64,000 bases of DNA from Auanema rhodensis (GCA_964057225.1 OZ059895.1:15872001-15936000), one strand, 5' to 3'; counted from the stretch's first letter, positions 26,791 to 38,527 are shown. Numbers and translations are program-made. The notes: generated by a model not told the origin, from the letters alone.

Positions 26791-27521
26791 CTATTTATGA
26801 TATATTCTGCAATGGCATCGCAAATCTTTCGAAAGTAACATAATCAGAAACACCTACTATGAGTGAAGCAGAGCATAATATTCAGTGAAAACATAAATAA
26901 AACATAAGATTTCAATATCAGTTTGTTTTAAAAAACGAAACTCACTTAAGCTTTAAAGCTGCAGGCTTAACATATGAATCAAAGATTGTTTTTTTACATT
27001 TTCCTAATATGATATTTGGATCAATGTATGCGAAACAGATGAGATTCACAAGATGAAGACAACAAGCATGCCAGATTTAAGTATAATTAACATATTTGGG
27101 AAAATACAAATGTTTTTCACATCCTAGATCATTTTGAGAATAGTAAGTTTCTTTTAAAAATTGTATAATATGAACAGAAACCAATAATAATATTAAATAA
27201 CCGAATGAAAAGCATCTGTATTCAGTTTTTCACGTGGACATTCATGTAAAATGTATGAAAATTTGTTTTTCATCTTTACATTTCTATGTCGTAACTATCA
27301 ACATTATCATATTAAACTCATTGTAGACATGCAGAGCAGCGTTGTATAAGTAATTGATGATTTAGTAAATTCTTTATTGATGCAAATGTATTATAAACAT
27401 CATAATTTCAATTTCAACTCTTATTATAACAATATAAATCTTCTGTATAATAAATAAATAAATGTTGTACATCATCTCGATCTATCTCATTTCTGATCAA
27501 CAGATATTTGAATATTTAGTG

Positions 27522-27575
27522 AATCAAAGAACACATTTACGGATAATTTAACCCTGCTGATACTCACCACTACCA
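27522..27575 (-). pseudogene. Decayed, internally deleted terminal unit of the 727-bp array, including a tRNA-Asp fragment
   Basis: AATCAAAGAACACATTTACGGATAATTTAACCCT resembles the spacer AATCAAGGAACAATTTTACTGATAATTAACCCT. It is followed by GATACTCACCACTA (27559-27572), an exact 14-nt piece of the tRNA D-arm, which then joins the intact array. Confidence 0.7.
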
Positions 27576-27811
27576 CGCTACACGTTATCAGAATACCAAC
27601 GTTACGATTCTAAGTCTCTCCCTTAGCTTCAATCATCACAATTTCCTGAAAAGAAAAATTGTAGTATAGAAGTAATTTTATAACATGAAGAACAACCGGT
27701 CAAGTGCTATTATAATTCAAAAATGAAGTGAGCGTGTGGATGTACGTGGATCTCACGTGATGCTTTCAAGATATTCTAATCACCAAACATGAAATTTATA
27801 CTAGAGATTGT

Positions 27812-27973
27812 AAGGGACGCGCGAACGCATCCCCAAACGCAAAAATTTAGCTGTTGGCGAATCTCAACTCGAGATTGCCATACAGGTCAGCCCAATCGAA
27901 AAGTGCAATGATCAGGCCTCTTCGTAGAGAGCCCGCCTTGATGATCGCGGGCAGCTCCCAGCCAGGTAAGTTT
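27812..27973 (-). ncRNA. U1: U1 spliceosomal snRNA, copy 1
   Basis: The minus strand reads AAACTTACCTGG (5' splice-site pairing), then SL1 GCCCGC-GATCATCAAG-GCGGGC, SL2 with the U1A loop ATTGCAC, SL3 TGGCAATCTC-GAGTT-GAGATTCGCCA, the Sm site AATTTTTG, and SL4 GGGATGCG-TTCG-CGCGTCCC. The 3' end is uncertain by a few nt. Confidence 0.97.
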
Positions 27974-28014
27974 AATGGTCAACTCAATGAGTCTAACAGG
28001 CCATACCTTATTTA

Positions 28015-28034
28015 GTATCTCATATGGGTTTCAC
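28015..28034 (-). promoter_or_regulatory. Putative snRNA proximal sequence element (PSE) of U1, repeated in each unit
   Basis: GTGAAACCCATATGAGATAC lies at about -61 to -42 from the U1 start. Both the position and the GAACCC-like core resemble the C. elegans snRNA PSE. Inferred, not demonstrated. Confidence 0.5.
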
Positions 28035-28217
28035 TTCTTTTTAATATATGAACTTGAGGGAAAACATTCGGAATGTCTTTGATTGCAACTCATGTGGGAA
28101 AACCTGTAATCATATTAAAAACCATCCTGTTCACGACCAATTCGCCAATCAAGGAACAATTTTACTGATAATTAACCCTCAGGGCATTACATGGAAGGAT
28201 ATAAATCCAAGTGGTGC

Positions 28218-28221
28218 AAAA
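28218..28221 (-). terminator. Pol III terminator (T4) of tRNA-Asp, repeated in each unit
   Basis: On the minus strand the tRNA 3' end is followed by AATA-TTTT-GC, with a further T5 about 100 nt downstream. Confidence 0.6.
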
Positions 28222-28225
28222 TATT

Positions 28226-28297
28226 CTCCCCGGCCGGGAATTGAACCCGGGTCTCGCATGTGACAGACGCGGATACTCACCACTATACTACCGAGGA
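28226..28297 (-). tRNA. tRNA-Asp-GTC: tRNA-Asp(GUC), copy 1
   Basis: Minus strand TCCTCGGTAGTATAGTGGTGAGTATCCGCGTCT-GTC-ACATGCGAGACCCGGGTTCAATTCCCGGCCGGGGAG: a 72-nt cloverleaf with A and B boxes and anticodon GTC. Confidence 0.98.
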
Positions 28298-28538
28298 CAC
28301 GTCGGTACACGTTATCAGAATACCAACGTTTCGATTCTAAGTCTCTCCCTTAGCTTCAATCATCACAATTTCCTGAAAAGAAAAATTGTAGTATAGAAGT
28401 AATTTTATAACATGAAGAACAACCGGTCAAGTGCTATTATAATTCAAAAATGAAGTGAGCGTGTGGATGTACGTGGATTTCACGTGATGCTTTCAAGATA
28501 TTCTAATCACCAAACATGAAATTTATACTAGAGATTGT

Positions 28539-28700
28539 AAGGGACGCGCGAACGCATCCCCAAACGCAAAAATTTAGCTGTTGGCGAATCTCAACTCGAG
28601 ATTGCCATACAGGTCAGCCCAATCGAAAAGTGCAATGATCAGGCCTCTTCGTAGAGAGCCCGCCTTGATGATCGCGGGCAGCTCCCAGCCAGGTAAGTTT
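28539..28700 (-). ncRNA. U1: U1 snRNA, copy 2
   Basis: Same sequence as copy 1, offset +727. Confidence 0.97.
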
Positions 28701-28952
28701 AATGGTCAACTCAATGAGTCTAACAGGCCATACCTTATTTAGTATCTCATATGGGTTTCACTTCTTTTTAATATATGAACTTGAGGGAAAACATTCGGAA
28801 TGTCTTTGATTGCAACTCATGTGGGAAAACCTGTAATCATATTAAAAACCATCCTGTTCACGACCAATTCGCCAATCAAGGAACAATTTTACTGATAATT
28901 AACCCTCAGGGCATTACATGGAAGGATATAAATCCAAGTGGTGCAAAATATT

Positions 28953-29024
28953 CTCCCCGGCCGGGAATTGAACCCGGGTCTCGCATGTGACAGACGCGGA
29001 TACTCACCACTATACTACCGAGGA
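28953..29024 (-). tRNA. tRNA-Asp-GTC: tRNA-Asp(GUC), copy 2
   Basis: Same sequence as copy 1, offset +727. Confidence 0.98.
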
Positions 29025-29265
29025 CACGTCGGTACACGTTATCAGAATACCAACGTTTCGATTCTAAGTCTCTCCCTTAGCTTCAATCATCACAATTTCC
29101 TGAAAAGAAAAATTGTAGTATAGAAGTAATTTTATAACATGAAGAACAACCGGTCAAGTGCTATTATAATTCAAAAATGAAGTGAGCGTGTGGATGTACG
29201 TGGATTTCACGTGATGCTTTCAAGATATTCTAATCACCAAACATGAAATTTATACTAGAGATTGT

Positions 29266-29427
29266 AAGGGACGCGCGAACGCATCCCCAAACGCAAAAAT
29301 TTAGCTGTTGGCGAATCTCAACTCGAGATTGCCATACAGGTCAGCCCAATCGAAAAGTGCAATGATCAGGCCTCTTCGTAGAGAGCCCGCCTTGATGATC
29401 GCGGGCAGCTCCCAGCCAGGTAAGTTT
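29266..29427 (-). ncRNA. U1: U1 snRNA, copy 3
   Basis: Same sequence as copy 1. Confidence 0.97.
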
Positions 29428-29679
29428 AATGGTCAACTCAATGAGTCTAACAGGCCATACCTTGTTTGGTATCTCATATGGGTTTCACTTCTTTTTAATA
29501 TATGAACTTGAGGGAAAACATTCGGAATGTCTTTGATTGCAACTCATGTGGGAAAACCTGTAATCATATTAAAAACCATCCTGTTCACGACCAATTCGCC
29601 AATCAAGGAACAATTTTACTGATAATTAACCCTCAGGGCATTACATGGAAGGATATAAATCCAAGTGGTGCAAAATATT

Positions 29680-29751
29680 CTCCCCGGCCGGGAATTGAAC
29701 CCGGGTCTCGCATGTGACAGACGCGGATACTCACCACTATACTACCGAGGA
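29680..29751 (-). tRNA. tRNA-Asp-GTC: tRNA-Asp(GUC), copy 3
   Basis: Same sequence as copy 1. Confidence 0.98.
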
Positions 29752-29992
29752 CACGTCGCTACACGTTATCAGAATACCAACGTTACGATTCTAAGTCTCT
29801 CCCTTAGCTTCAATCATCACAATTTCCTGAAAAGAAAAATTGTAGTATAGAAGTAATTTTATAACATGAAGAACAACCGGTCAAGTGCTATTATAATTCA
29901 AAAATGAAGTGAGCGTGTGGATGTACGTGGATCTCACGTGATGCTTTCAAGATATTCTAATCACCAAACATGAAATTTATACTAGAGATTGT

Positions 29993-30154
29993 AAGGGACG
30001 CGCGAACGCATCCCCAAACGCAAAAATTTAGCTGTTGGCGAATCTCAACTCGAGATTGCCATACAGGTCAGCCCAATCGAAAAGTGCAATGATCAGGCCT
30101 CTTCGTAGAGAGCCGGCCTTGATGATCGCGGGCAGCTCCCAGCCAGGTAAGTTT
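29993..30154 (-). ncRNA. U1: U1 snRNA, copy 4 (one substitution in stem I at 30115)
   Basis: As copy 1 except plus-strand AGCCGGCC instead of AGCCCGCC. Confidence 0.95.
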
Positions 30155-30406
30155 AATGGTCAACTCAATGAGTCTAACAGGCCATACCTTGTTTGGTATC
30201 TCATATCGGTTTCACTTCTTTTTAATATATGAACTTGAGGGAAAACATTCGGAATGTCTTTGATTGCAACTCATGTGGGAAAACCTGTAATCATATTAAA
30301 AACCATCCTGTTCACGACCAATTCGCCAATCAAGGAACAATTTTACTGATAATTAACCCTCAGGGCATTACATGGAAGGATATAAATCCAAGTGGTGCAA
30401 AATATT

Positions 30407-30478
30407 CTCCCCGGCCGGGAATTGAACCCGGGTCTCGCATGTGACAGACGCGGATACTCACCACTATACTACCGAGGA
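30407..30478 (-). tRNA. tRNA-Asp-GTC: tRNA-Asp(GUC), copy 4
   Basis: Same sequence as copy 1. Confidence 0.98.
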
Positions 30479-30719
30479 CACGTCGCTACACGTTATCAGA
30501 ATACCAACGTTACGATTCTAAGTCTCTCCCTTAGCTTCAATCATCACAATTTCCTGAAAAGAAAAATTGTAGTATAGAAGTAATTTTATAACATGAAGAA
30601 CAACCGGTCAAGTGCTATTATAATTCAAAAATGAAGTGAGCGTGTGGATGTACGTGGATCTCACGTGATGCTTTCAAGATATTCTAATCACCAAACATGA
30701 AATTTATACTCGAGATTGT

Positions 30720-30881
30720 AAGGGACGCGCGAACGCATCCCCAAACGCAAAAATTTAGCTGTTGGCGAATCTCAACTCGAGATTGCCATACAGGTCAGCC
30801 CAATCGAAAAGTGCAATGATCAGGCCTCTTCGTAGAGAGCCCGCCTTGATGATCGCGGGCAGCTCCCAGCCAGGTAAGTTT
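30720..30881 (-). ncRNA. U1: U1 snRNA, copy 5
   Basis: Same sequence as copy 1. Confidence 0.97.
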
Positions 30882-31133
30882 AATGGTCAACTCAATGAGT
30901 CTAACAGGCCATACATTGTTTGGTATCTCATATGGGTTTCACTTCTTTTTAATATATGAACTTGAGGGAAAACATTCGGAATGTCTTTGATTGCAACTCA
31001 TGTGGGAAAACCTGTAATCATATTAAAAACCATCCTGTTCACGACCAATTCGCCAATCAAGGAACAATTTTACTGATAATTAACCCTCAGGGCATTACAT
31101 GGAAGGATATAAATCCAAGTGGTGCAAAATATT

Positions 31134-31205
31134 CTCCCCGGCCGGGAATTGAACCCGGGTCTCGCATGTGACAGACGCGGATACTCACCACTATACTACC
31201 GAGGA
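31134..31205 (-). tRNA. tRNA-Asp-GTC: tRNA-Asp(GUC), copy 5
   Basis: Same sequence as copy 1. Confidence 0.98.
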
Positions 31206-31446
31206 CACGTAGCTACACGTTATCAGAATACCAACGTTACGATTCTAAGTCTCTCCCTTAGCTTCAATCATCACAATTTCCTGAAAAGAAAAATTGTAGT
31301 ATAGAAGTAATTTTATAACATGAAGAACAACCGGTCAAGTGCTATTATAATTCAAAAATGAAGTGAGCGTGTGGATGTACGTGGATCTCACGTGATGCTT
31401 TCAAGATATTCTAATCAGCAAACATGAAATTTATACTAGAGATTGT

Positions 31447-31608
31447 AAGGGACGCGCGAACGCATCCCCAAACGCAAAAATTTAGCTGTTGGCGAATCTC
31501 AACTCGAGATTGCCATACAGGTCAGCCCAATCGAAAAGTGCAATGATCAGGCCTCTTCGTAGAGAGCCCGCCTTGATGATCGCGGGCAGCTCCCAGCCAG
31601 GTAAGTTT
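31447..31608 (-). ncRNA. U1: U1 snRNA, copy 6
   Basis: Same sequence as copy 1. Confidence 0.97.
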
Positions 31609-31860
31609 AATGGTCAACTCAATGAGTCTAACAGCCCATACCTTGTTTGGTATCTCATATGGGTTTCACTTCTTTTTAATATATGAACTTGAGGGAAAAC
31701 ATTCGGAATGTCTTTGATTGCAACTCATGTGGGAAAACCTGTAATCATGTTAAAAACCATCCTGTTCACGACAAATTCGCCAATCAAGGAACAATTTTAC
31801 TGATAATTAACCCTCAGGGCATTACATGGAAGGATATAAATCCAAGTGGTGCAAAATATT

Positions 31861-31932
31861 CTCCCCGGCCGGGAATTGAACCCGGGTCTCGCATGTGACA
31901 GACGCGGATACTCACCACTATACTACCGAGGA
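31861..31932 (-). tRNA. tRNA-Asp-GTC: tRNA-Asp(GUC), copy 6
   Basis: Same sequence as copy 1. Confidence 0.98.
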
Positions 31933-32173
31933 CACGTCGCTACACGTTATCAGAATACCAACGTTACGATTCTAAGTCTCTCCCTTAGCTTCAATCATCA
32001 CAATTTCCTGAAAAGAAAAATTGTAGTATAGAAGTAATTTTATAACATGAAGAACAACCGGTCAAGTGCTATTATAATTCAAAAATGAAGTGAGCGTGTG
32101 GATGTACGTGGATCTCACGTGATGCTTTCAAGATATTCTAATCAGCAAACATGAAATTTATACTAGAGATTGT

Positions 32174-32335
32174 AAGGGACGCGCGAACGCATCCCCAAAC
32201 GCAAAAATTTAGCTGTTGGCGAATCTCAACTCGAGATTGCCATACAGGTCAGCCCAATCGAAAAGTGCAATGATCAGGCCTCTTCGTAGAGAGCCCGCCT
32301 TGATGATCGCGGGCAGCTCCCAGCCAGGTAAGTTT
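32174..32335 (-). ncRNA. U1: U1 snRNA, copy 7
   Basis: Same sequence as copy 1. Confidence 0.97.
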
Positions 32336-32587
32336 AATGGTCAACTCAATGAGTCTAACAGGCCATACCTTGTTTGGTATCTCATATGGGTTTCACTTCT
32401 TTTTAATATATGAACTTGAGGGAAAACATTCGGAATGTCTTTGATTGCAACTCATGTGGGAAAACCTGTAATCATATTAAAAACCATCCTGTTCACGACC
32501 AATTCGCCAATCAAGGAACAATTTTACTGATAATTAACCCTCAGGGCATTACATGGAAGGATATAAATCCAAGTGGTGCAAAATATT

Positions 32588-32659
32588 CTCCCCGGCCGGG
32601 AATTGAACCCGGGTCTCGCATGTGACAGACGCGGATACTCACCACTATACTACCGAGGA
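32588..32659 (-). tRNA. tRNA-Asp-GTC: tRNA-Asp(GUC), copy 7
   Basis: Same sequence as copy 1. Confidence 0.98.
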
Positions 32660-32900
32660 CACGTCGCTACACGTTATCAGAATACCAACGTTACGATTCT
32701 AAGTCTCTCCCTTAGCTTCAATCATCACAATTTCCTGAAAAGAAAAATTGTAGTATAGAAGTAATTTTATAACATGAAGAACAACCGGTCAAGTGCTATT
32801 ATAATTCAAAAATGAAGTGAGCGTGTGGATGTACGTGGATCTCACGTGATGCTTTCAAGATATTCTAATCACCAAACATGAAATTTATACTCGAGATTGT

Positions 32901-33062
32901 AAGGGACGCGCGAACGCATCCCCAAACGCAAAAATTTAGCTGTTGGCGAATCTCAACTCGAGATTGCCATACAGGTCAGCCCAATCGAAAAGTGCAATGA
33001 TCAGGCCTCTTCGTAGAGAGCCCGCCTTGATGATCGCGGGCAGCTCCCAGCCAGGTAAGTTT
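32901..33062 (-). ncRNA. U1: U1 snRNA, copy 8
   Basis: Same sequence as copy 1. Confidence 0.97.
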
Positions 33063-33314
33063 AATGGTCAACTCAATGAGTCTAACAGGCCATACCTTGT
33101 TTGGTATCTCATATGGGTTTCACTTCTTTTTAATATATGAACTTGAGGGAAAACATTCGGAATGTCTTTGATTGCAACTCATGTGGGAAAACCTGTAATC
33201 ATATTAAAAACCATCCTGTTCACGACCAATTCGCCAATCAAGGAACAATTTTACTGATAATTAACCCTCAGGGCATTACATGGAAGGATATAAATCCAAG
33301 TGGTGCAAAATATT

Positions 33315-33386
33315 CTCCCCGGCCGGGAATTGAACCCGGGTCTCGCATGTGACAGACGCGGATACTCACCACTATACTACCGAGGA
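33315..33386 (-). tRNA. tRNA-Asp-GTC: tRNA-Asp(GUC), copy 8
   Basis: Same sequence as copy 1. Confidence 0.98.
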
Positions 33387-33627
33387 CACGTAGCTACACG
33401 TTATCAGAATACCAACGTTACGATTCTAAGTCTCTCCCTTAGCTTCAATCATCACAATTTCCTGAAAAGAAAAATTGTAGTATAGAAGTAATTTTATAAC
33501 ATGAAGAACAACCGGTCAAGTGCTATTATAATTCAAAAATGAAGTGAGCGTGTGGATGTACGTGGATCTCACGTGATGCTTTCAAGATATTCTAATCACC
33601 AAACATGAAATTTATACTAGAGATTGT

Positions 33628-33789
33628 AAGGGACGCGCGAACGCATCCCCAAACGCAAAAATTTAGCTGTTGGCGAATCTCAACTCGAGATTGCCATACA
33701 GGTCAGCCCAATCGAAAAGTGCAATGATCAGGCCTCTTCGTAGAGAGCCCGCCTTGATGATCGCGGGCAGCTCCCAGCCAGGTAAGTTT
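33628..33789 (-). ncRNA. U1: U1 snRNA, copy 9
   Basis: Same sequence as copy 1. Confidence 0.97.
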
Positions 33790-34041
33790 AATGGTCAACT
33801 CAATGAGTCTAACAGGCCATACCTTGTTTGGTATCTCATATCGGTTTCACTTCTTTTTAATATATGAACTTGAGGGAAAACATTCGGAATGTCTTTGATT
33901 GCAACTCATGTGGGAAAACCTGTAATCATATTAAAAACCATCCTGTTCACGACCAATTCGCCAATCAAGGAACAATTTTACTGATAATTAACCCTCAGGG
34001 CATTACATGGAAGGATATAAATCCAAGTGGTGCAAAATATT

Positions 34042-34113
34042 CTCCCCGGCCGGGAATTGAACCCGGGTCTCGCATGTGACAGACGCGGATACTCACCACT
34101 ATACTACCGAGGA
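34042..34113 (-). tRNA. tRNA-Asp-GTC: tRNA-Asp(GUC), copy 9
   Basis: Same sequence as copy 1. Confidence 0.98.
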
Positions 34114-34354
34114 CACGTCGCTACACGTTATCAGAATACCAACGTTACGATTCTAAGTCTCTCCCTTAGCTTCAATCATCACAATTTCCTGAAAAGAAAA
34201 ATTGTAGTATAGAAGTAATTTTATAACATGAAGAACAACCGGTCAAGTGCTATTATAATTCAAAAATGAAGTGAGCGTGTGGATGTACGTGGATCTCACG
34301 TGATGCTTTCAAGATATTCTAATCACCAAACATGAAATTTATACTCGAGATTGT

Positions 34355-34516
34355 AAGGGACGCGCGAACGCATCCCCAAACGCAAAAATTTAGCTGTTGG
34401 CGAATCTCAACTCGAGATTGCCATACAGGTCAGCCCAATCGAAAAGTGCAATGATCAGGCCTCTTCGTAGAGAGCCCGCCTTGATGATCGCGGGCAGCTC
34501 CCAGCCAGGTAAGTTT
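34355..34516 (-). ncRNA. U1: U1 snRNA, copy 10
   Basis: Same sequence as copy 1. Confidence 0.97.
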
Positions 34517-34768
34517 AATGGTCAACTCAATGAGTCTAACAGGCCATACCTTGTTTGGTATCTCATATGGGTTTCACTTCTTTTTAATATATGAACTTGA
34601 GGGAAAACATTCGGAATGTCTTTGATTGCAACTCATGTGGGAAAACCTGTAATCATATTAAAAACCATCCTGTTCACGACCAATTCGCCAATCAAGGAAC
34701 AATTTTACTGATAATTAACCCTCAGGGCATTACATGGAAGGATATAAATCCAAGTGGTGCAAAATATT

Positions 34769-34840
34769 CTCCCCGGCCGGGAATTGAACCCGGGTCTCGC
34801 ATGTGACAGACGCGGATACTCACCACTATACTACCGAGGA
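34769..34840 (-). tRNA. tRNA-Asp-GTC: tRNA-Asp(GUC), copy 10
   Basis: Same sequence as copy 1. Confidence 0.98.
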
Positions 34841-35081
34841 CACGTAGCTACACGTTATCAGAATACCAACGTTACGATTCTAAGTCTCTCCCTTAGCTTC
34901 AATCATCACAATTTCCTGAAAAGAAAAATTGTAGTATAGAAGTAATTTTATAACATGAAGAACAACCGGTCAAGTGCTATTATAATTCAAAAATGAAGTG
35001 AGCGTGTGGATGTACGTGGATCTCACGTGATGCTTTCAAGATATTCTAATCACCAAACATGAAATTTATACTAGAGATTGT

Positions 35082-35243
35082 AAGGGACGCGCGAACGCAT
35101 CCCCAAACGCAAAAATTTAGCTGTTGGCGAATCTCAACTCGAGATTGCCATACAGGTCAGCCCAATCGAAAAGTGCAATGATCAGGCCTCTTCGTAGAGA
35201 GCCCGCCTTGATGATCGCGGGCAGCTCCCAGCCAGGTAAGTTT
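35082..35243 (-). ncRNA. U1: U1 snRNA, copy 11 (intact RNA, upstream flank truncated at -56)
   Basis: Same RNA sequence as copy 1. Array homology stops at 35299, inside the putative PSE, and there is no upstream tRNA. Confidence 0.93.
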
Positions 35244-35407
35244 AATGGTCAACTCAATGAGTCTAACAGGCCATACCTTGTTTGGTATCTCATATGGGTA
35301 TGACTATTTATAAGAAACTTTGAGCTAAGAAATACATTTATTATTAGAAACAATATACCAATATCAAAAAAAATAAAGACTATTCAACATCAATTTGAAT
35401 AATGAGA

Positions 35408-35886
35408 TTAACGACGACAAACGAAAAATGCAAATCGGCCATTATTTCCTTGTATCTGACCACTTTCCCCGACACGAAGTTCCTTGAGTTCGCCATTTCT
35501 ATCGCGTAAGACGCATGCTAGAACAGAAGATTGAACTATCGTTTAAGCTTGTTCTTCACGTACATTCAATTTGGAAAGAATATGAAGAACCCCTAGAGCG
35601 GCAGTAGAACCGATAGCCCATTTGAGGATGAAGAATATGATCTACATAACTTTGGAAAGGCACATAAGCAGCTTCGGAAGTAAGCCAGTCAGCATAACAC
35701 CCTATGGAAGTATTTAAATTGCTATAACGATGTTAGACGACAAATTAATGTTTTACCGGCTCTACTAATTTCTCCATTTTTGCATTCTTTATAGAAGCTT
35801 CCCTGACGAAAGCGGAAACCTTCCTCACAGCACTGTACTGCTACCAATACGAAAATCAATATACTTCCGTGAGCGAGCCAAGCCAT
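35408..35886 (-). CDS. Small secreted Cys-rich protein (~125 aa, 3 exons), resembles nematode MIG-18-like fibronectin type I repeat proteins
   Basis: Spliced translation: MAWLAHGSILIFVLVAVQCCEEGFRFRQGSFYKECKNGEISRA/GCYADWLTSEAAYVPFQSYVDHILHPQMGYRFYCRSRGSSYSFQIE/SCVLRDRNGELKELRVGESGQIQGNNGRFAFFVCRR*. It has a signal peptide and two phase-compatible GT-AG introns. The domain call rests on Cys/Gly spacing only. Confidence 0.7.
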
Positions 35887-37251
35887 ATCTGCACGAATAA
35901 CTTAAGATATGAAGATGAATCTTTCAAAAACAAAAAGAAAATGACTGAACTAAGATTTAGTCATACGAAGCGCCGTTGCAGCTCTGCTTACTGCTGATAA
36001 TGCGGCTCATGCTGTATCTTCTTATTTCACATCCATCTCACTTTTTTAGGAGGTCAATACGATTAATTAACTTTAAGTATCAGCTGCTGTTCAGTCATTT
36101 TTTGGCTGAATATATCCACCTACGTTCACCGAAATAATGCTGATATGTAACTGCTTCTTGAGAGAAAGAAGTTTGAAAGAACGAAAAAAAGTTGGAAAAT
36201 GGATCTGAGCACAATGCTTATCTAAGATCGAAATACAATTTCTTTTGATTTACAACATCCAAGCAGTTTTGTCATTTTTTTCTGATTCCTTCTTAAAAAC
36301 ATTTTTGTTTCAATAAAAATGATTAATTATTGCAGCAACGGCTTTCAATGCTGAAATTTAAAAAATTGCAAGAATGCCACACCAGCGTTGTTAACGTTAA
36401 ATGCTCACGTTCATTCTAATAAACATGAAAACAATATGGCTTAGTATCATGTCGTATACTTCAATTATTTGTAGGAACAAGTTTGAAACATGAATCACAC
36501 AAAGCGAACAATGCTCAAAACGTTAACACGACCTTTCACGAATTTACTGGTCATGATTGTTAGTACGAACTCAATCTTTTTCTCCCCGCCGATTTATTAG
36601 AAGGTGATTCCCTCAAAACACAGTCATAATTCATCAATCGAAGCCAGGTGCAGTCCACGAGCGTTTGCTAACAAACAACTAAGAAGAAACTCGTTTATAT
36701 TCAAAGTGTGGAGACAGAGTGACAAGTGAACAGAAGAAACTTTAATATTTATTAATTGCTGAGAAAAATATTGATATATTCATGATCCACAATATAATTT
36801 TTATTTTTAATCTTTTGAATAACTTCATTCCAAGTGACACCAGGAGATCAGATTTCTGGGAGACGGCCTGTGGTCATTACAAATCCGTATAGGAAACTTT
36901 TCGTTTTTTATGAAGCCAGATGACGTCCGAGTAAATGACCCATGGCGCTCAATCGAAGCGTTGATATGATGCCACAGCGTAGCTATGAAGAAACAATGAT
37001 ACACGTAACGAAGATATCCACATCAGGGATACTGAAGGTGACACAGAGGATGGCAGTTGAGTGAGTGAAACAAACCAAGTTTTAGACAAGAAAAGGCTTA
37101 TAATAAATCATCATCACTTATAGAATATGCAGATTGGCGTAACGAAGATGACTTAAAAATAAAAAAAGAAAGAGAGTGCGAGAGAGAGAGAAAAGAAGAC
37201 AGAGTGAAAGAAAAGGGGCATAATGAACATTAGAAAGAATTTAGAGCTCAA

Positions 37252-37678
37252 CTATGGAATCTGAAGTTGTGACATAGTTCCTTGAGCTAGCATATGAATG
37301 ACGCGGGTATCTCGCTTAGGAGTTCGTCGCCCATCCCAACACAGATACATGGACCATACAAGTACCATCAAAATTGAAATAACCACGTAGGCAAAACTAA
37401 AAAAAAGCAAATCAATAGTTTGAAAAATCAGTCAAAGCCACAAGCAATCTTTCACGAATAAATCTAATTGAAATCAGATAAAGGAGTTTTAATTGTAAGA
37501 GCTCGAGAGCAAGTACTTGAGGAAGTAATCGCAACTGATGATGATAGCAGGCGGTAAGTGAAGATGAGTGAAAATTAAAAAGAGCCAACCTTATATAAGT
37601 TACAGCCTGCTCTCGAGTCCATATACCAAAAAAGAGTGTCGTTGAGTTTGTGTCGATCCTATCCCCGTTAAATTCCAT
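37252..37678 (-). CDS. Possible small single-pass membrane protein (~77 aa, 2 exons; may have further 5' exons)
   Basis: MEFNGDRIDTNSTTLFFGIWTREQAVTYIS/FAYVVISILMVLVWSMYLCWDGRRTPKRDTRVIHMLAQGTMSQLQIP*, using donor AAG|GTTGGC and acceptor TTTTTAG. One hydrophobic helix followed by basic residues. No recognised homologue. Confidence 0.35.
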
Positions 37679-38527
37679 ACATTCTTTTTGTCTGTAAAAT
37701 TAAAAAGATATTATCAAAACTGAATAATTAAAAACTCTTCGGTCCTGACACAATAGATAGATAATCAAAGGTGCAAAAACGAAATGTCAATTGAAATTTC
37801 TCTCATTTTCTTCCTCAATCATTCTTCCAAGCCTTAAACACTGTTCTACACCCAATTTCTCTCTCTCTTTTCCTTCTTCACTCCCTCTCATCTGATCATT
37901 ATCCACATATTACACATCAATAGAAATAAAGCTTGTTACGTTAGAAAGGACAATCCGAATAGTCTACTGCAAGATGCTAACAGTTTACAGAGGTGTGAGA
38001 GAAAGCATGAGCAAGAGAGAAAGTAAGAAGATGACCGCGAAATCGAAACTTGGAAGGATATTCGGCTATACGTTTTCAGAAAAAAAAGATGATGAATAAA
38101 ATTGTAGAGGATAGGAATACGCGTGAAAATGAACAGACGAATGAACTAATAATCTCATCAGCAAACCTGTGATAACAGTTGTTCTACAGAGATATCTAGG
38201 AGTTCGTAGTGACAATTTCGTTAGTGAGACGAAAAAAAGTAACAAGATTGAGAAGAGGAATAAATCTGAAATTGAGTTTCAAACTTGAGTTCGATGACGA
38301 AACAGATTAAACTCCAATGTCCTGCCCTTTCAGTGAAATTGCTTGAAGAATCAGGGAAAATCAAAGGACAATCTGGTTCATTCTGAGAATAATATCGAAT
38401 GATGAGACAAGGCTAGTAAACAATCATAACGGTGTGAGTAGTTCAAAGGTTTTATGAAGAAAAGCATATGTTGTTTCTTAGACGATAAGCAGGGTTAAAT
38501 GTTGAAGTTGATGATGCTCAACACATT

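Follow-up and report, generated by a model that had tools for sequence, protein, structure and literature searches.

The window, which is the whole stretch of 64,000 nucleotides of Auanema rhodense DNA that was analysed, contains a tandem array of head-to-tail units that repeat exactly every 727 bp; 11 U1 snRNA genes and 10 tRNA-Asp(GTC) genes lie in it, all on the minus strand. On that strand each unit reads tRNA, 252 nt, U1 and 241 nt before the next tRNA, which is the order and spacing of the original prediction; the tRNA count comes from ARAGORN and Rfam alike, the U1 count from Rfam and the 727-bp period from the shift-727 identity profile. The whole array, which is block B of a larger family, occupies positions 27520-35299 (10.6 units of 727 bp, degenerate terminal remnant included; minus strand, as for all features below). 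Identity in the shift-by-727 self-comparison was 96-100% from about 27,576 to 35,299, with a background of about 25% beyond the array, and TRF placed the array at C3 15,899,576-15,907,299 (period 727, 10.6 copies, 99% matches). A tandem repeat tool with a maximum period of 500 made no call for the 727-bp array because 500 is its longest period. The predicted extent (27576-35299) holds at the high end, but at the low end the array reaches about 50 bases further; this degenerate terminal unit (27520-27576), identified by comparison with the subfamily alignment, consists of an internally deleted remnant of a tRNA fused to spacer of the C/D/E-subfamily type.

Regarding the U1 genes, Rfam RF00003 yielded 107.9 bits for ten copies and 101.9 bits for one (model positions 1-166), and the covariance-model check proposed with the original prediction therefore returned 11 full-length U1, all above the gathering score of 69.5. 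Copy 1 (35082-35243; 107.9 bits), which lies furthest 5' on the minus strand, has no upstream tRNA yet is intact, as seen in the upstream alignment; its promoter homology begins at -55, some 30 bp away from where the neighbouring gene ends. Copy 2 (34355-34516; 107.9 bits) is identical to eight further copies (blastn identity 100%, 107.9 bits each) at 33628-33789, 32901-33062, 32174-32335, 31447-31608, 30720-30881, 29266-29427, 28539-28700 and 27812-27973. The remaining copy (29993-30154; 101.9 bits) carries the single change G40C, in variable unit column 364, which breaks the stem-loop I pair 25-40. In the cmscan alignment the array U1 has the 5' splice-site pairing sequence ACUUACCUG, the Sm site, which is a T5 run inside the gene, and the stem-loop II loop AUUGCAC. 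The stem-loop I loop (AUCA..AAG) is present, and the variant falls within the range of five canonical U1 genes found elsewhere in the genome. Stem-loop I pair 18-46, most commonly G-C in the canonical genes, is A-U in the array U1 only, and pair 23-42, most commonly U-A, is C-G in the array U1 and in one canonical gene (L002); pairing is kept at both positions, and at the sequence level the differences from canonical U1 are compensatory.

ARAGORN identified 10 tRNA-Asp(GTC) genes, and Rfam found the same 10 (RF00005, 55.4 bits; cut-off for the tRNA comparison 29). Copy 1 lies at 34769-34840, and the identical copies at 34042-34113, 33315-33386, 32588-32659, 31861-31932, 31134-31205, 30407-30478, 29680-29751, 28953-29024 and 28226-28297. 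The gene folds as a cloverleaf with a GTC anticodon, its internal A and B boxes are legible as TAGTATAGTGG and GGTTCAATTCC, and it matches dispersed tRNA-Asp genes of C3 6.36-9.1 Mb at 100% identity. A TTTT run, predicted as the Pol III terminator in a terminator-like scan (34761-34764 for copy 1), stands 5-8 nt past the tRNA in every unit and is kept in both unit subfamilies despite the diverged flank, as in the alignment of AATATTTTG with AATGTTTTA. By their sequences, both genes of the array, U1 and tRNA, look functional.

A PSE-like motif, AACCCATATGAGATACC, lies at -57 to -41 of U1 (34557-34573 for copy 2) and recurs every 727 bp. The canonical U1 genes carry CACCCATAnnAGATACG at the same upstream position, and ACCCATAnnAGATAC, a putative SNAPc site, is common to array and canonical genes. 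The strict canonical form of the motif had six matches genome-wide, four of them upstream of canonical U1, and its reversed control had none. Between the unit subfamilies the U1 promoter (-64 to -1) has 0-2 differences. A second conserved segment, a block of 175 bp that follows the 3' flank of U1 and precedes the tRNA (34121-34295; unit positions 546-720 in every unit), differs between subfamilies at 3/175 positions, the counts for the other spacers being 58/189 and 10/59; it is confined to the U1/tRNA-Asp arrays and gave no Rfam match and no stable fold.

Of the 17 variable columns in the 10 full units, 16 fall in spacers and one in U1, while the tRNA has none (Fisher p = 0.017, genes versus non-genes), which bears out the prediction that both RNAs are nearly invariant with most SNPs in the spacers. 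Within arrays, U1 is the least polymorphic part, with 1.9% of columns variable versus 9.6-11.9% in the two flanks. Units are at least 99% alike within blocks and about 84-86% alike between subfamilies. Between subfamilies A/B and C/D/E, differences number 0/72 in the tRNA, 0/162 in U1 and 1-2/64 in the U1 promoter, versus 58/189 in the flank 3' of the tRNA and 10/59 in the one 3' of U1 (p = 3e-22, genes versus the two flanks, which differ by 17-31%); the tRNA-to-PSE spacer of about 190 bp is the most diverged segment of the unit. Blocks A and B differ in the tRNA 3' flank at 1/189 positions and from C/D/E at 58/189, a contrast that may reflect a swapped segment rather than steady divergence, which makes this flank an imperfect neutral yardstick. 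Among 47 C/D/E units, 5/72 tRNA columns are variable, and the tRNA copies of the array could stay identical, with no selection on them, through ectopic gene conversion from the numerous tRNA-Asp genes elsewhere. The subfamily-invariant genes, the compensatory changes in stem-loop I and the shared PSE-like motif are evidence that the array genes have been kept by selection. With its fixed unit length, greater likeness within than between arrays, conserved genes and freely varying spacers, the array classes as a concertedly evolving tandem multigene family.

The original prediction, made from the sequence alone, could not see that the block belongs to a larger family, which has about 111 units. 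The 5' 30-mer of the array-type U1 had 111 exact genome matches, and 100/100 among the matches listed fell within C3 15.86-16.64 Mb, where the family is arranged in several blocks in both orientations. Six blocks within 264 kb (C3 15,832,001-16,096,000) hold 67 U1 and 65 tRNA-Asp genes. The period is 727 in all blocks, the tRNA-then-U1 order and strand are constant in both subfamilies, and a 199-bp satellite and inserted transposons interrupt the family. Only five other U1 genes, canonical and dispersed, exceeded the Rfam cut-off among those scored; by gene count the family (about 111 array-type copies versus five) is the main U1 locus, a point that the original prediction had set out for checking. 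The linkage that was to be sought genome-wide did not extend to the canonical genes, since no tRNA lies within 1.5 kb of any of the five. The tRNA-Asp 30-mer had 1,441 exact genome matches and U1-linked units number 111, and more than 1,300 tRNA-Asp copies therefore lie outside those units. In sister arrays the U1 5' 30-mers are 733 or 633 bp apart and the tRNA-Asp 30-mers 1,314 bp apart, spacings that would imply some U1 copies without a tRNA-Asp of their own. The tRNA 3' flank motif of the unit had 84 matches, all on C3 and exclusive to the U1/tRNA-Asp family. U2 arrays are also present in the genome. The assembly comprises 180.9 Mb, and the available text of an August 2026 preprint describes tandem tRNA, 5S and U2 arrays and 19,554 tRNA loci, i.e. 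the amplification of many small-RNA genes in A. rhodense (Gonzalez de la Rosa et al., bioRxiv 10.64898/2026.08.27.747507).

The array adjoins a 33-kb satellite and two spliced genes that are expressed, as judged from RNA contigs. One of these genes (35327-35862; exons 35862-35756, 35700-35564 and 35517-35327; seen as spliced contigs in RNA runs X11 and X12) has GT..AG introns of 55 and 46 nt, an RNA word depth of 103-174 and exon-wise open frames with a stop in exon 3, and ends about 30 bp from the array. The array U1 was represented in one of two RNA runs by a single 184-nt contig of depth 2.7, extending 24 nt upstream beyond +1, which could be DNA carry-over or read-through. Canonical U1 was not found in either RNA run, and the libraries therefore lose snRNAs. 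Depths in the whole-worm DNA run X7, coarse because they are taken from contigs, were 83.9 for unique flank, 69.4 for a canonical (L001-type) U1 contig, a yardstick presumed to lie in retained DNA, and 8,189 for the array U1. The latter is 98 times the flank versus 111 assembled copies, and the depth per assembled copy (8,189/111 = 74) is close to flank and canonical U1. Eliminated DNA, according to the preprint text, has about 8-fold lower depth than retained DNA and only ten genes above 3 TPM (bioRxiv 10.64898/2026.08.27.747507). No break-site-like palindrome and no telomere repeat was found within C3 15,832,001-16,096,000. DNA depth and the expressed neighbouring genes suggest that the array remains in somatic DNA, and the contig depths lean against its assignment to the eliminated class.

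The array is probably a co-amplified two-gene family under concerted evolution, with independent genes whose pairing is a by-product rather than a regulatory coupling. Unequal crossing-over would have amplified a U1 gene jointly with the tRNA-Asp gene beside it, and concerted evolution would keep the units homogeneous. Each 727-bp unit would comprise two independent same-strand transcription units: tRNA-Asp, presumably transcribed by Pol III with the A and B boxes as internal promoter and the TTTT 5-8 nt downstream as terminator, and the variant U1, presumably transcribed by Pol II with the PSE-like element at -57 to -41. The 175-bp block shows that the unit contains something outside this co-amplification model. 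It is rather improbable that the array encodes a U1 variant with a function of its own, expressed in bulk (e.g., a high-demand germline or embryonic supply, like the embryonic U1 arrays of frogs), that the block is a regulatory element in common use (an enhancer, an insulator or a termination zone) and that the unit, tRNA included, is one selected regulatory module; if the block were regulatory, U1 and tRNA would no longer be chance neighbours.

The original prediction went further and proposed that chromatin at the U1 PSE may be opened by TFIIIC at the tRNA. A functional coupling of this kind, in which TFIIIC/TFIIIB at tRNA-Asp opens or insulates chromatin and thereby keeps active the U1 PSE lying 190 bp downstream, the pair having been amplified because U1 needs the tRNA, is very doubtful. 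tRNA genes can serve as nucleosome-free boundary elements, and the constancy of gene order, strand and 727-bp period across all blocks and both subfamilies would fit, but constant order is expected from co-amplification anyway. The canonical U1 genes share the PSE-like motif and its spacing, and none has a tRNA within 1.5 kb; the tRNA-to-PSE spacer is the least conserved segment (58/189), and the first U1 of the block is intact without an upstream tRNA. The U1 spacings of 733 or 633 bp versus 1,314 bp for tRNA-Asp in sister arrays, and the amplification of tRNA-Asp alone more than 1,300 times elsewhere, likewise argue against the coupling. What stands of the predicted compact two-polymerase repeat is the pairing of a tRNA with a gene that has an snRNA-type promoter, for which the likeness to the SL1-5S repeat is a fair one in layout; the chromatin-opening mechanism is not supported.

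Inert, satellite-like amplification, with a silenced or little-used array, U1 supplied by the five canonical genes, and likeness produced only by rapid homogenisation and biased gene conversion, is unlikely. It would suit a genome that amplifies many small-RNA genes (19,554 tRNA loci, 5S and U2 arrays), an array beside a 33-kb satellite and broken by transposons, the point changes in some tRNA copies, and the lack of a clear array U1 signal in two RNA runs, which lose snRNAs. However, homogenisation works within subfamilies and alone would not hold only genes and promoter alike across two of them (0/162 in U1 and 1-2/64 in the promoter versus 17-31% in the flanks); the changes from canonical U1 are compensatory, and neither the PSE-like motif nor the Pol III terminator has been lost. 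Most improbable is a germline-restricted supply of bulk variant U1 for oocytes and early embryos, similar to the embryonic U1 arrays of frogs and sea urchins. The distinct sequence of the array U1, the adjoining satellite and the developmentally switched U1 isoforms of Xenopus, mouse and sea urchin (PMC4291461) are in line with it, but the per-copy depth of 74 resembles flank (83.9) and canonical U1 (69.4) rather than the depth of about one eighth of retained DNA that the preprint reports for eliminated DNA. Against it as well are the two expressed spliced genes abutting the array, and the stretch C3 15,832,001-16,096,000 without a break-site-like palindrome or telomere repeat. A joint amplification of two independent genes remains the preferred reading.

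Trypanosomatid snRNA genes are driven by the A/B boxes of a divergent tRNA about 100 bp upstream and are read by Pol III. A tRNA stands next to an snRNA gene in both systems, but the A. rhodense array does not fit a tRNA-dependent promoter of this type: its genes share a strand, are 252 bp apart, and U1 has its own PSE-like motif; the T5 run of the U1 Sm site would stop Pol III. The SL1 RNA and 5S rRNA tandem repeat of C. elegans (unit of about 1 kb, about 110 copies) likewise pairs an snRNA-type Pol II gene with a PSE and a Pol III gene under concerted evolution. SL1 and 5S lie on opposite strands, whereas U1 and tRNA-Asp share one; the partners also differ, being SL1 and 5S there and U1 and tRNA-Asp here, and the U1 genes of C. 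elegans are dispersed.

Linked tandem repeats of 5S rDNA and U1 are known from the crustacean Asellus aquaticus (Pelliccia et al. 2001) and from fishes (Silva et al. 2015), as cited in PMC3464664 and PMC10361878, and 5S-tRNA linkage from mussels and a fungus (PMC3464664). U1 or tRNA ride there as passengers in the unit of another small RNA, which the literature reads as co-amplification; the carrier is 5S rDNA, whereas the A. rhodense unit has U1 and tRNA only, and literature searches found no unit made of these two alone. Tandem U1 and U2 arrays with developmentally switched isoforms occur in vertebrates and sea urchin (Xenopus, mouse, sea urchin: PMC4291461; Xenopus copy numbers: PMC10361878). 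They resemble the A. rhodense array in having many tandem copies, variants beside the canonical form and concerted evolution, but they have no tRNA partner. A. rhodense itself has tandem tRNA, 5S and U2 arrays (bioRxiv 10.64898/2026.08.27.747507). The preprint's text, as far as available, names 5S, several tRNAs and U2 but neither U1 nor a mixed U1/tRNA unit, and describes its arrays in eliminated DNA, whereas the U1/tRNA-Asp array appears to be retained. The phenomenon is thus published for this genome with the cassette itself unnamed in that text, and the array represents the same amplification of small-RNA genes in the same genome.

The array in the window lies on the minus strand at 27,520-35,299 (block B). 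ARAGORN predicted ten tRNA-Asp(GTC) genes on that strand, and the search against Rfam returned 11 full-length U1 snRNA genes as well as these ten tRNAs; all are minus-strand genes at an exact spacing of 727 bp. Ten of the 11 U1 copies scored 107.9 bits and the remaining one 101.9 bits, all above the RF00003 gathering score of 69.5; the array tRNA scored 55.4 bits. Read along the minus strand, the unit runs tRNA, 252 nt, U1, 241 nt and the next tRNA. In a self-comparison shifted by 727, identity was 96-100% across approximately 27,576-35,299 and at background level elsewhere. A tandem repeat search with a longest period of 500 did not report the array, which was detected by TRF with a longer period limit. 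At the low-coordinate end stands an internally deleted tRNA remnant (27,520-27,576). Every number in the original prediction's description of the array (11 U1, 10 tRNA-Asp, 727 bp, 252 nt) was correct, and its statement that the RNAs are nearly invariant and the SNPs mostly in the spacers was borne out as well: of the 17 columns that varied across the ten full units, 16 fell in the spacers, one in U1 and none in the tRNA (Fisher p = 0.017).

Block B belongs to a larger family on the same contig, C3 (OZ059895.1). In the genome assembly (180,911,798 bases) an exact 30-mer of the array-type U1 5' end gave 111 matches, and the 100 matches listed all fell within C3 15.86-16.64 Mb, on both strands; arrays past 16.096 Mb are known from pattern-match coordinates alone. 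The 264 kb of C3 examined contained 67 U1 and 65 tRNA-Asp genes, distributed over block A (15.862 Mb, plus strand, two units), block B (15.8996-15.9073 Mb, minus strand, 11 U1 and 10 tRNA-Asp), block C (16.027-16.033 Mb, nine units), block D (16.045-16.053 Mb, 11 U1 and 10 tRNA-Asp), block E (16.059-16.082 Mb, 32 units) and block F (16.083-16.094 Mb, remnants), the last four on the plus strand. Blocks A and B flank, in opposite orientation and with their downstream ends towards it, a 32.8-kb satellite of approximately 165 copies of a 199-bp unit, 97-99% alike (window 1-24826; C3:15,864,033-15,896,826); the unique DNA between the satellite and the two blocks showed no mirror symmetry. Long open reading frames interrupt blocks C, D and E. 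The gap between C and D holds a frame of 2,679 codons on the minus strand (C3:16,034,351-16,042,387) with reverse transcriptase, RNase H, aspartyl protease and viral fusion-glycoprotein-like domains; it is an enveloped LTR retroelement that has inserted into the array, and identical 29-mers at C3 16,033,561 and 16,045,274 look like its two ends. The gap between D and E holds a frame of 1,099 codons without a Pfam match (C3:16,052,932-16,056,228), and immediately past the last array remnant comes a frame of 690 codons that weakly matches a MULE transposase (L050:7880-9949).

Outside the arrays lie five further U1 genes (109-116 bits), here called canonical; C3 5.75-6.15 Mb holds four and contig C7 the fifth. 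Four of these loci form two recent segmental duplicate pairs, L001/L004 and L003/L005, with flanks 97-98% alike, and a tandem repeat of approximately 366 bp adjoins L003 and L005 (L003:1771-3161; L005:1-1414). In the array U1, which is 162 nt long, the 5' splice-site sequence, the AUUGCAC loop and the Sm site are all retained. It differs from canonical U1 at 7-9 positions plus one inserted base, and from the C7 copy at 18 positions; its array-specific bases include an additional U in the loop of stem-loop II. The array-versus-canonical changes lie mostly in stem-loop I, where two pairs are altered on both sides with pairing kept, 18-46 from G-C to A-U and 23-42 from U-A to C-G. Positions -57 to -41 of the array U1 read AACCCATATGAGATACC, and exactly the same position in four canonical U1 genes reads CACCCATAnnAGATACG. 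The strict canonical form of this PSE-like promoter element gave six genome matches, of which four belong to canonical U1 genes, and the reversed control gave none. A pattern combining the PSE with a U2 start, for which the U2 5' end used is probably wrong for nematodes, yielded no match.

The 727-bp unit falls into two subfamilies, blocks A/B and blocks C/D/E, and their comparison is a clean natural experiment that separates the kept from the free parts of the unit. When the consensus of block B was compared with that of block E, no differences were found in the tRNA (0/72) or in U1 (0/162), two in the U1 promoter at -64 to -1 (2/64) and three in a 175-bp block that lies before the tRNA (3/175), as against 58/189 in the tRNA 3' flank, 10/59 in the U1 3' flank and 5/7 in the last 7 nt before the tRNA (genes versus the two diverged flanks, p = 3e-22). 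Polymorphism within the 47 C/D/E units followed the same trend. Variable columns made up 1.9% of U1 and 2.9% of the 175-bp block, as against 9.6% and 11.9% of the two flanks; with 6.9%, the tRNA was less protected than U1. We read this pattern as a sign that U1 and its promoter are under purifying selection. The kept parts are U1, its 64-bp promoter, the tRNA with its terminator and the 175-bp block. Regarding blocks A and B, the tRNA 3' flank differs at 1/189 positions and the U1 3' flank at 9/59, a contrast which indicates that the history of the unit is a mosaic; the 31% divergence of the tRNA 3' flank between the subfamilies may therefore stem in part from a swapped segment. The 59 bp directly after U1 (window 34297-34354, recurring every 727 bp; unit positions 487-545) are hypervariable and show the highest polymorphism within the array.

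The 175-bp block (e.g., window 34,121-34,295) recurs every 727 bp upstream of each tRNA and shows the same degree of conservation as the genes. It gave no Rfam match even at E values up to 10, folded no better than shuffled sequences on either strand, showed no likeness to the flanks of canonical U1 and had no RNA contig in the RNA runs X11 and X12. A reading as a C/D-box RNA was rejected, as GTGATGA, the form in block B, is replaced by GTGATCA in three of the four blocks compared with it.

The array tRNA has the same sequence as dispersed tRNA-Asp genes at C3 6.36-9.1 Mb, and a TTTT run occupies +5 to +8 behind it. An exact tRNA-Asp(GTC) 30-mer had 1,441 genome matches (492 forward, 949 reverse), with only approximately 100 copies linked to U1 and more than 1,300 outside the 111 U1-linked units. 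The conservation of the tRNA is compatible with selection as well as with ectopic conversion by its numerous other copies.

The original prediction proposed that TFIIIC at the tRNA opens chromatin for the U1 PSE. Such Pol III-Pol II cross-talk found no support. None of the five canonical U1 genes has a tRNA within 1.5 kb. The stretch from tRNA to PSE is the least constrained part of the unit between the subfamilies, and the first U1 of block B has no upstream tRNA, its homology beginning at -55. The spacing in sister arrays was 733 or 633 bp for U1 30-mers and 1,314 bp for tRNA-Asp 30-mers. Derivation of the unit from a pure tRNA-Asp satellite was also considered and rejected, since the 3' flank motif of the unit's tRNA is confined to the U1/tRNA-Asp family; its 84 matches, like the 114 first-look candidates for the 175-bp block, all lie in the C3 cluster. 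Judged from these motifs, the U1/tRNA-Asp unit is a lineage of its own. The array is real and tidy and probably functional, without the proposed polymerase cross-talk, and it reveals no new mechanism.

Whether the array belongs to retained or eliminated DNA was assessed with public runs, all of them assembled contigs in which starts, ends and expression levels are not readable; the stretch compared excluded the tRNA, which resembles human tRNA-Asp. The array flanks were identical in organisms A, B and C of this comparison. In the DNA run X7, a 3.3-kb contig of unique flank had a word depth of 83.9, a 124-nt contig matching canonical L001 (nine differences and one gap) a depth of 69.4, and the array U1 piece a depth of 8,189, i.e., 98 times the flank, compared with 111 assembled copies; in the DNA run X9 the ratio of U1 to flank was roughly 70-100. 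Eliminated DNA has approximately 1/8 of the depth of retained DNA, about 29x against about 236x in gene-rich regions, according to the genome report (10.64898/2026.08.27.747507), and together with the X7 depths this indicates that array, flank and canonical U1 are alike in status. The runs X11 and X12 represent genuine RNA, with contigs from which minus-strand GT..AG introns are spliced out. They cover well an expressed three-exon gene at window 35,327-35,862 (minus strand; introns of 46 and 55 nt), which ends approximately 30 bp from the array and its first U1 promoter, and whose product, with exons translated singly, resembles a small secreted protein rich in cysteine. A second spliced, expressed transcript lies beside the array at 36,753-37,693 (minus strand). 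According to the genome report, no more than ten eliminated genes lie above 3 TPM (10.64898/2026.08.27.747507). No break-site-like palindrome or telomere repeat was found in the 264 kb of C3, where two scans for break sites matched the two retroelement ends only, and three guessed break-site patterns had no match on C3. Taken together, these observations favour retained DNA as the probable location of the array. A short dispersed repeat at window 37054-37285 exceeded the flank in DNA word depth, by a factor of 9-33 in X7 and of 5-20 in X9, and many of its contigs continue into unlike sequence.

Regarding the expression of the array itself, X11 contained one 184-nt contig over the array U1 (depth 2.7), which extends 24 nt upstream of +1 and carries G40C, the variant of the U1 copy at 29,993-30,154. 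X12 had no array U1 contig, and canonical U1 was absent from both runs, whose libraries lose snRNAs.

The A. rhodense assembly of 180.9 Mb has 19,554 annotated tRNA loci, and the eliminated DNA is reported to include tandem 5S rRNA, several tRNA and U2 arrays; U1 is not named in the main text (10.64898/2026.08.27.747507). An array apparently in retained DNA qualifies the picture of the repeated small-RNA loci of this species as germline-only. U2 genes (147-150 bits) form arrays with a period of approximately 2.46 kb at C1:10,958,341-11,283,156 and are scattered on C8:6.98-10.33 Mb; with U2 also arrayed on contig C1, tandem growth of small-RNA genes is seen as a habit of this genome. A telomere-seeded near-palindrome just left of the U2 arrays (C1:10,852,760-10,852,784) may be a DNA-elimination break site. 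If the array genes are expressed, approximately 95% of A. rhodense U1 genes would be a sequence variant in one tandem family, and the species, with its huge tRNA, 5S and U2 arrays besides, would be handy for studies of snRNA gene dosage and variant evolution.

The SL1-5S repeat of C. elegans is a tandem unit with two kinds of small-RNA gene. Linked tandem units of 5S and U1 occur in a crustacean and in fishes, and of 5S and tRNA in mussels, according to PMC3464664 and PMC10361878; tandem snRNA arrays with variant isoforms are already known (PMC4291461). A unit of U1 and tRNA-Asp was not found in the literature searched. Like SL1-5S, 5S-U1 and 5S-tRNA, the array unit combines two kinds of small-RNA gene, and it is filed here as a known kind, the two-gene small-RNA tandem unit, in a new form, the pairing of U1 with tRNA-Asp.
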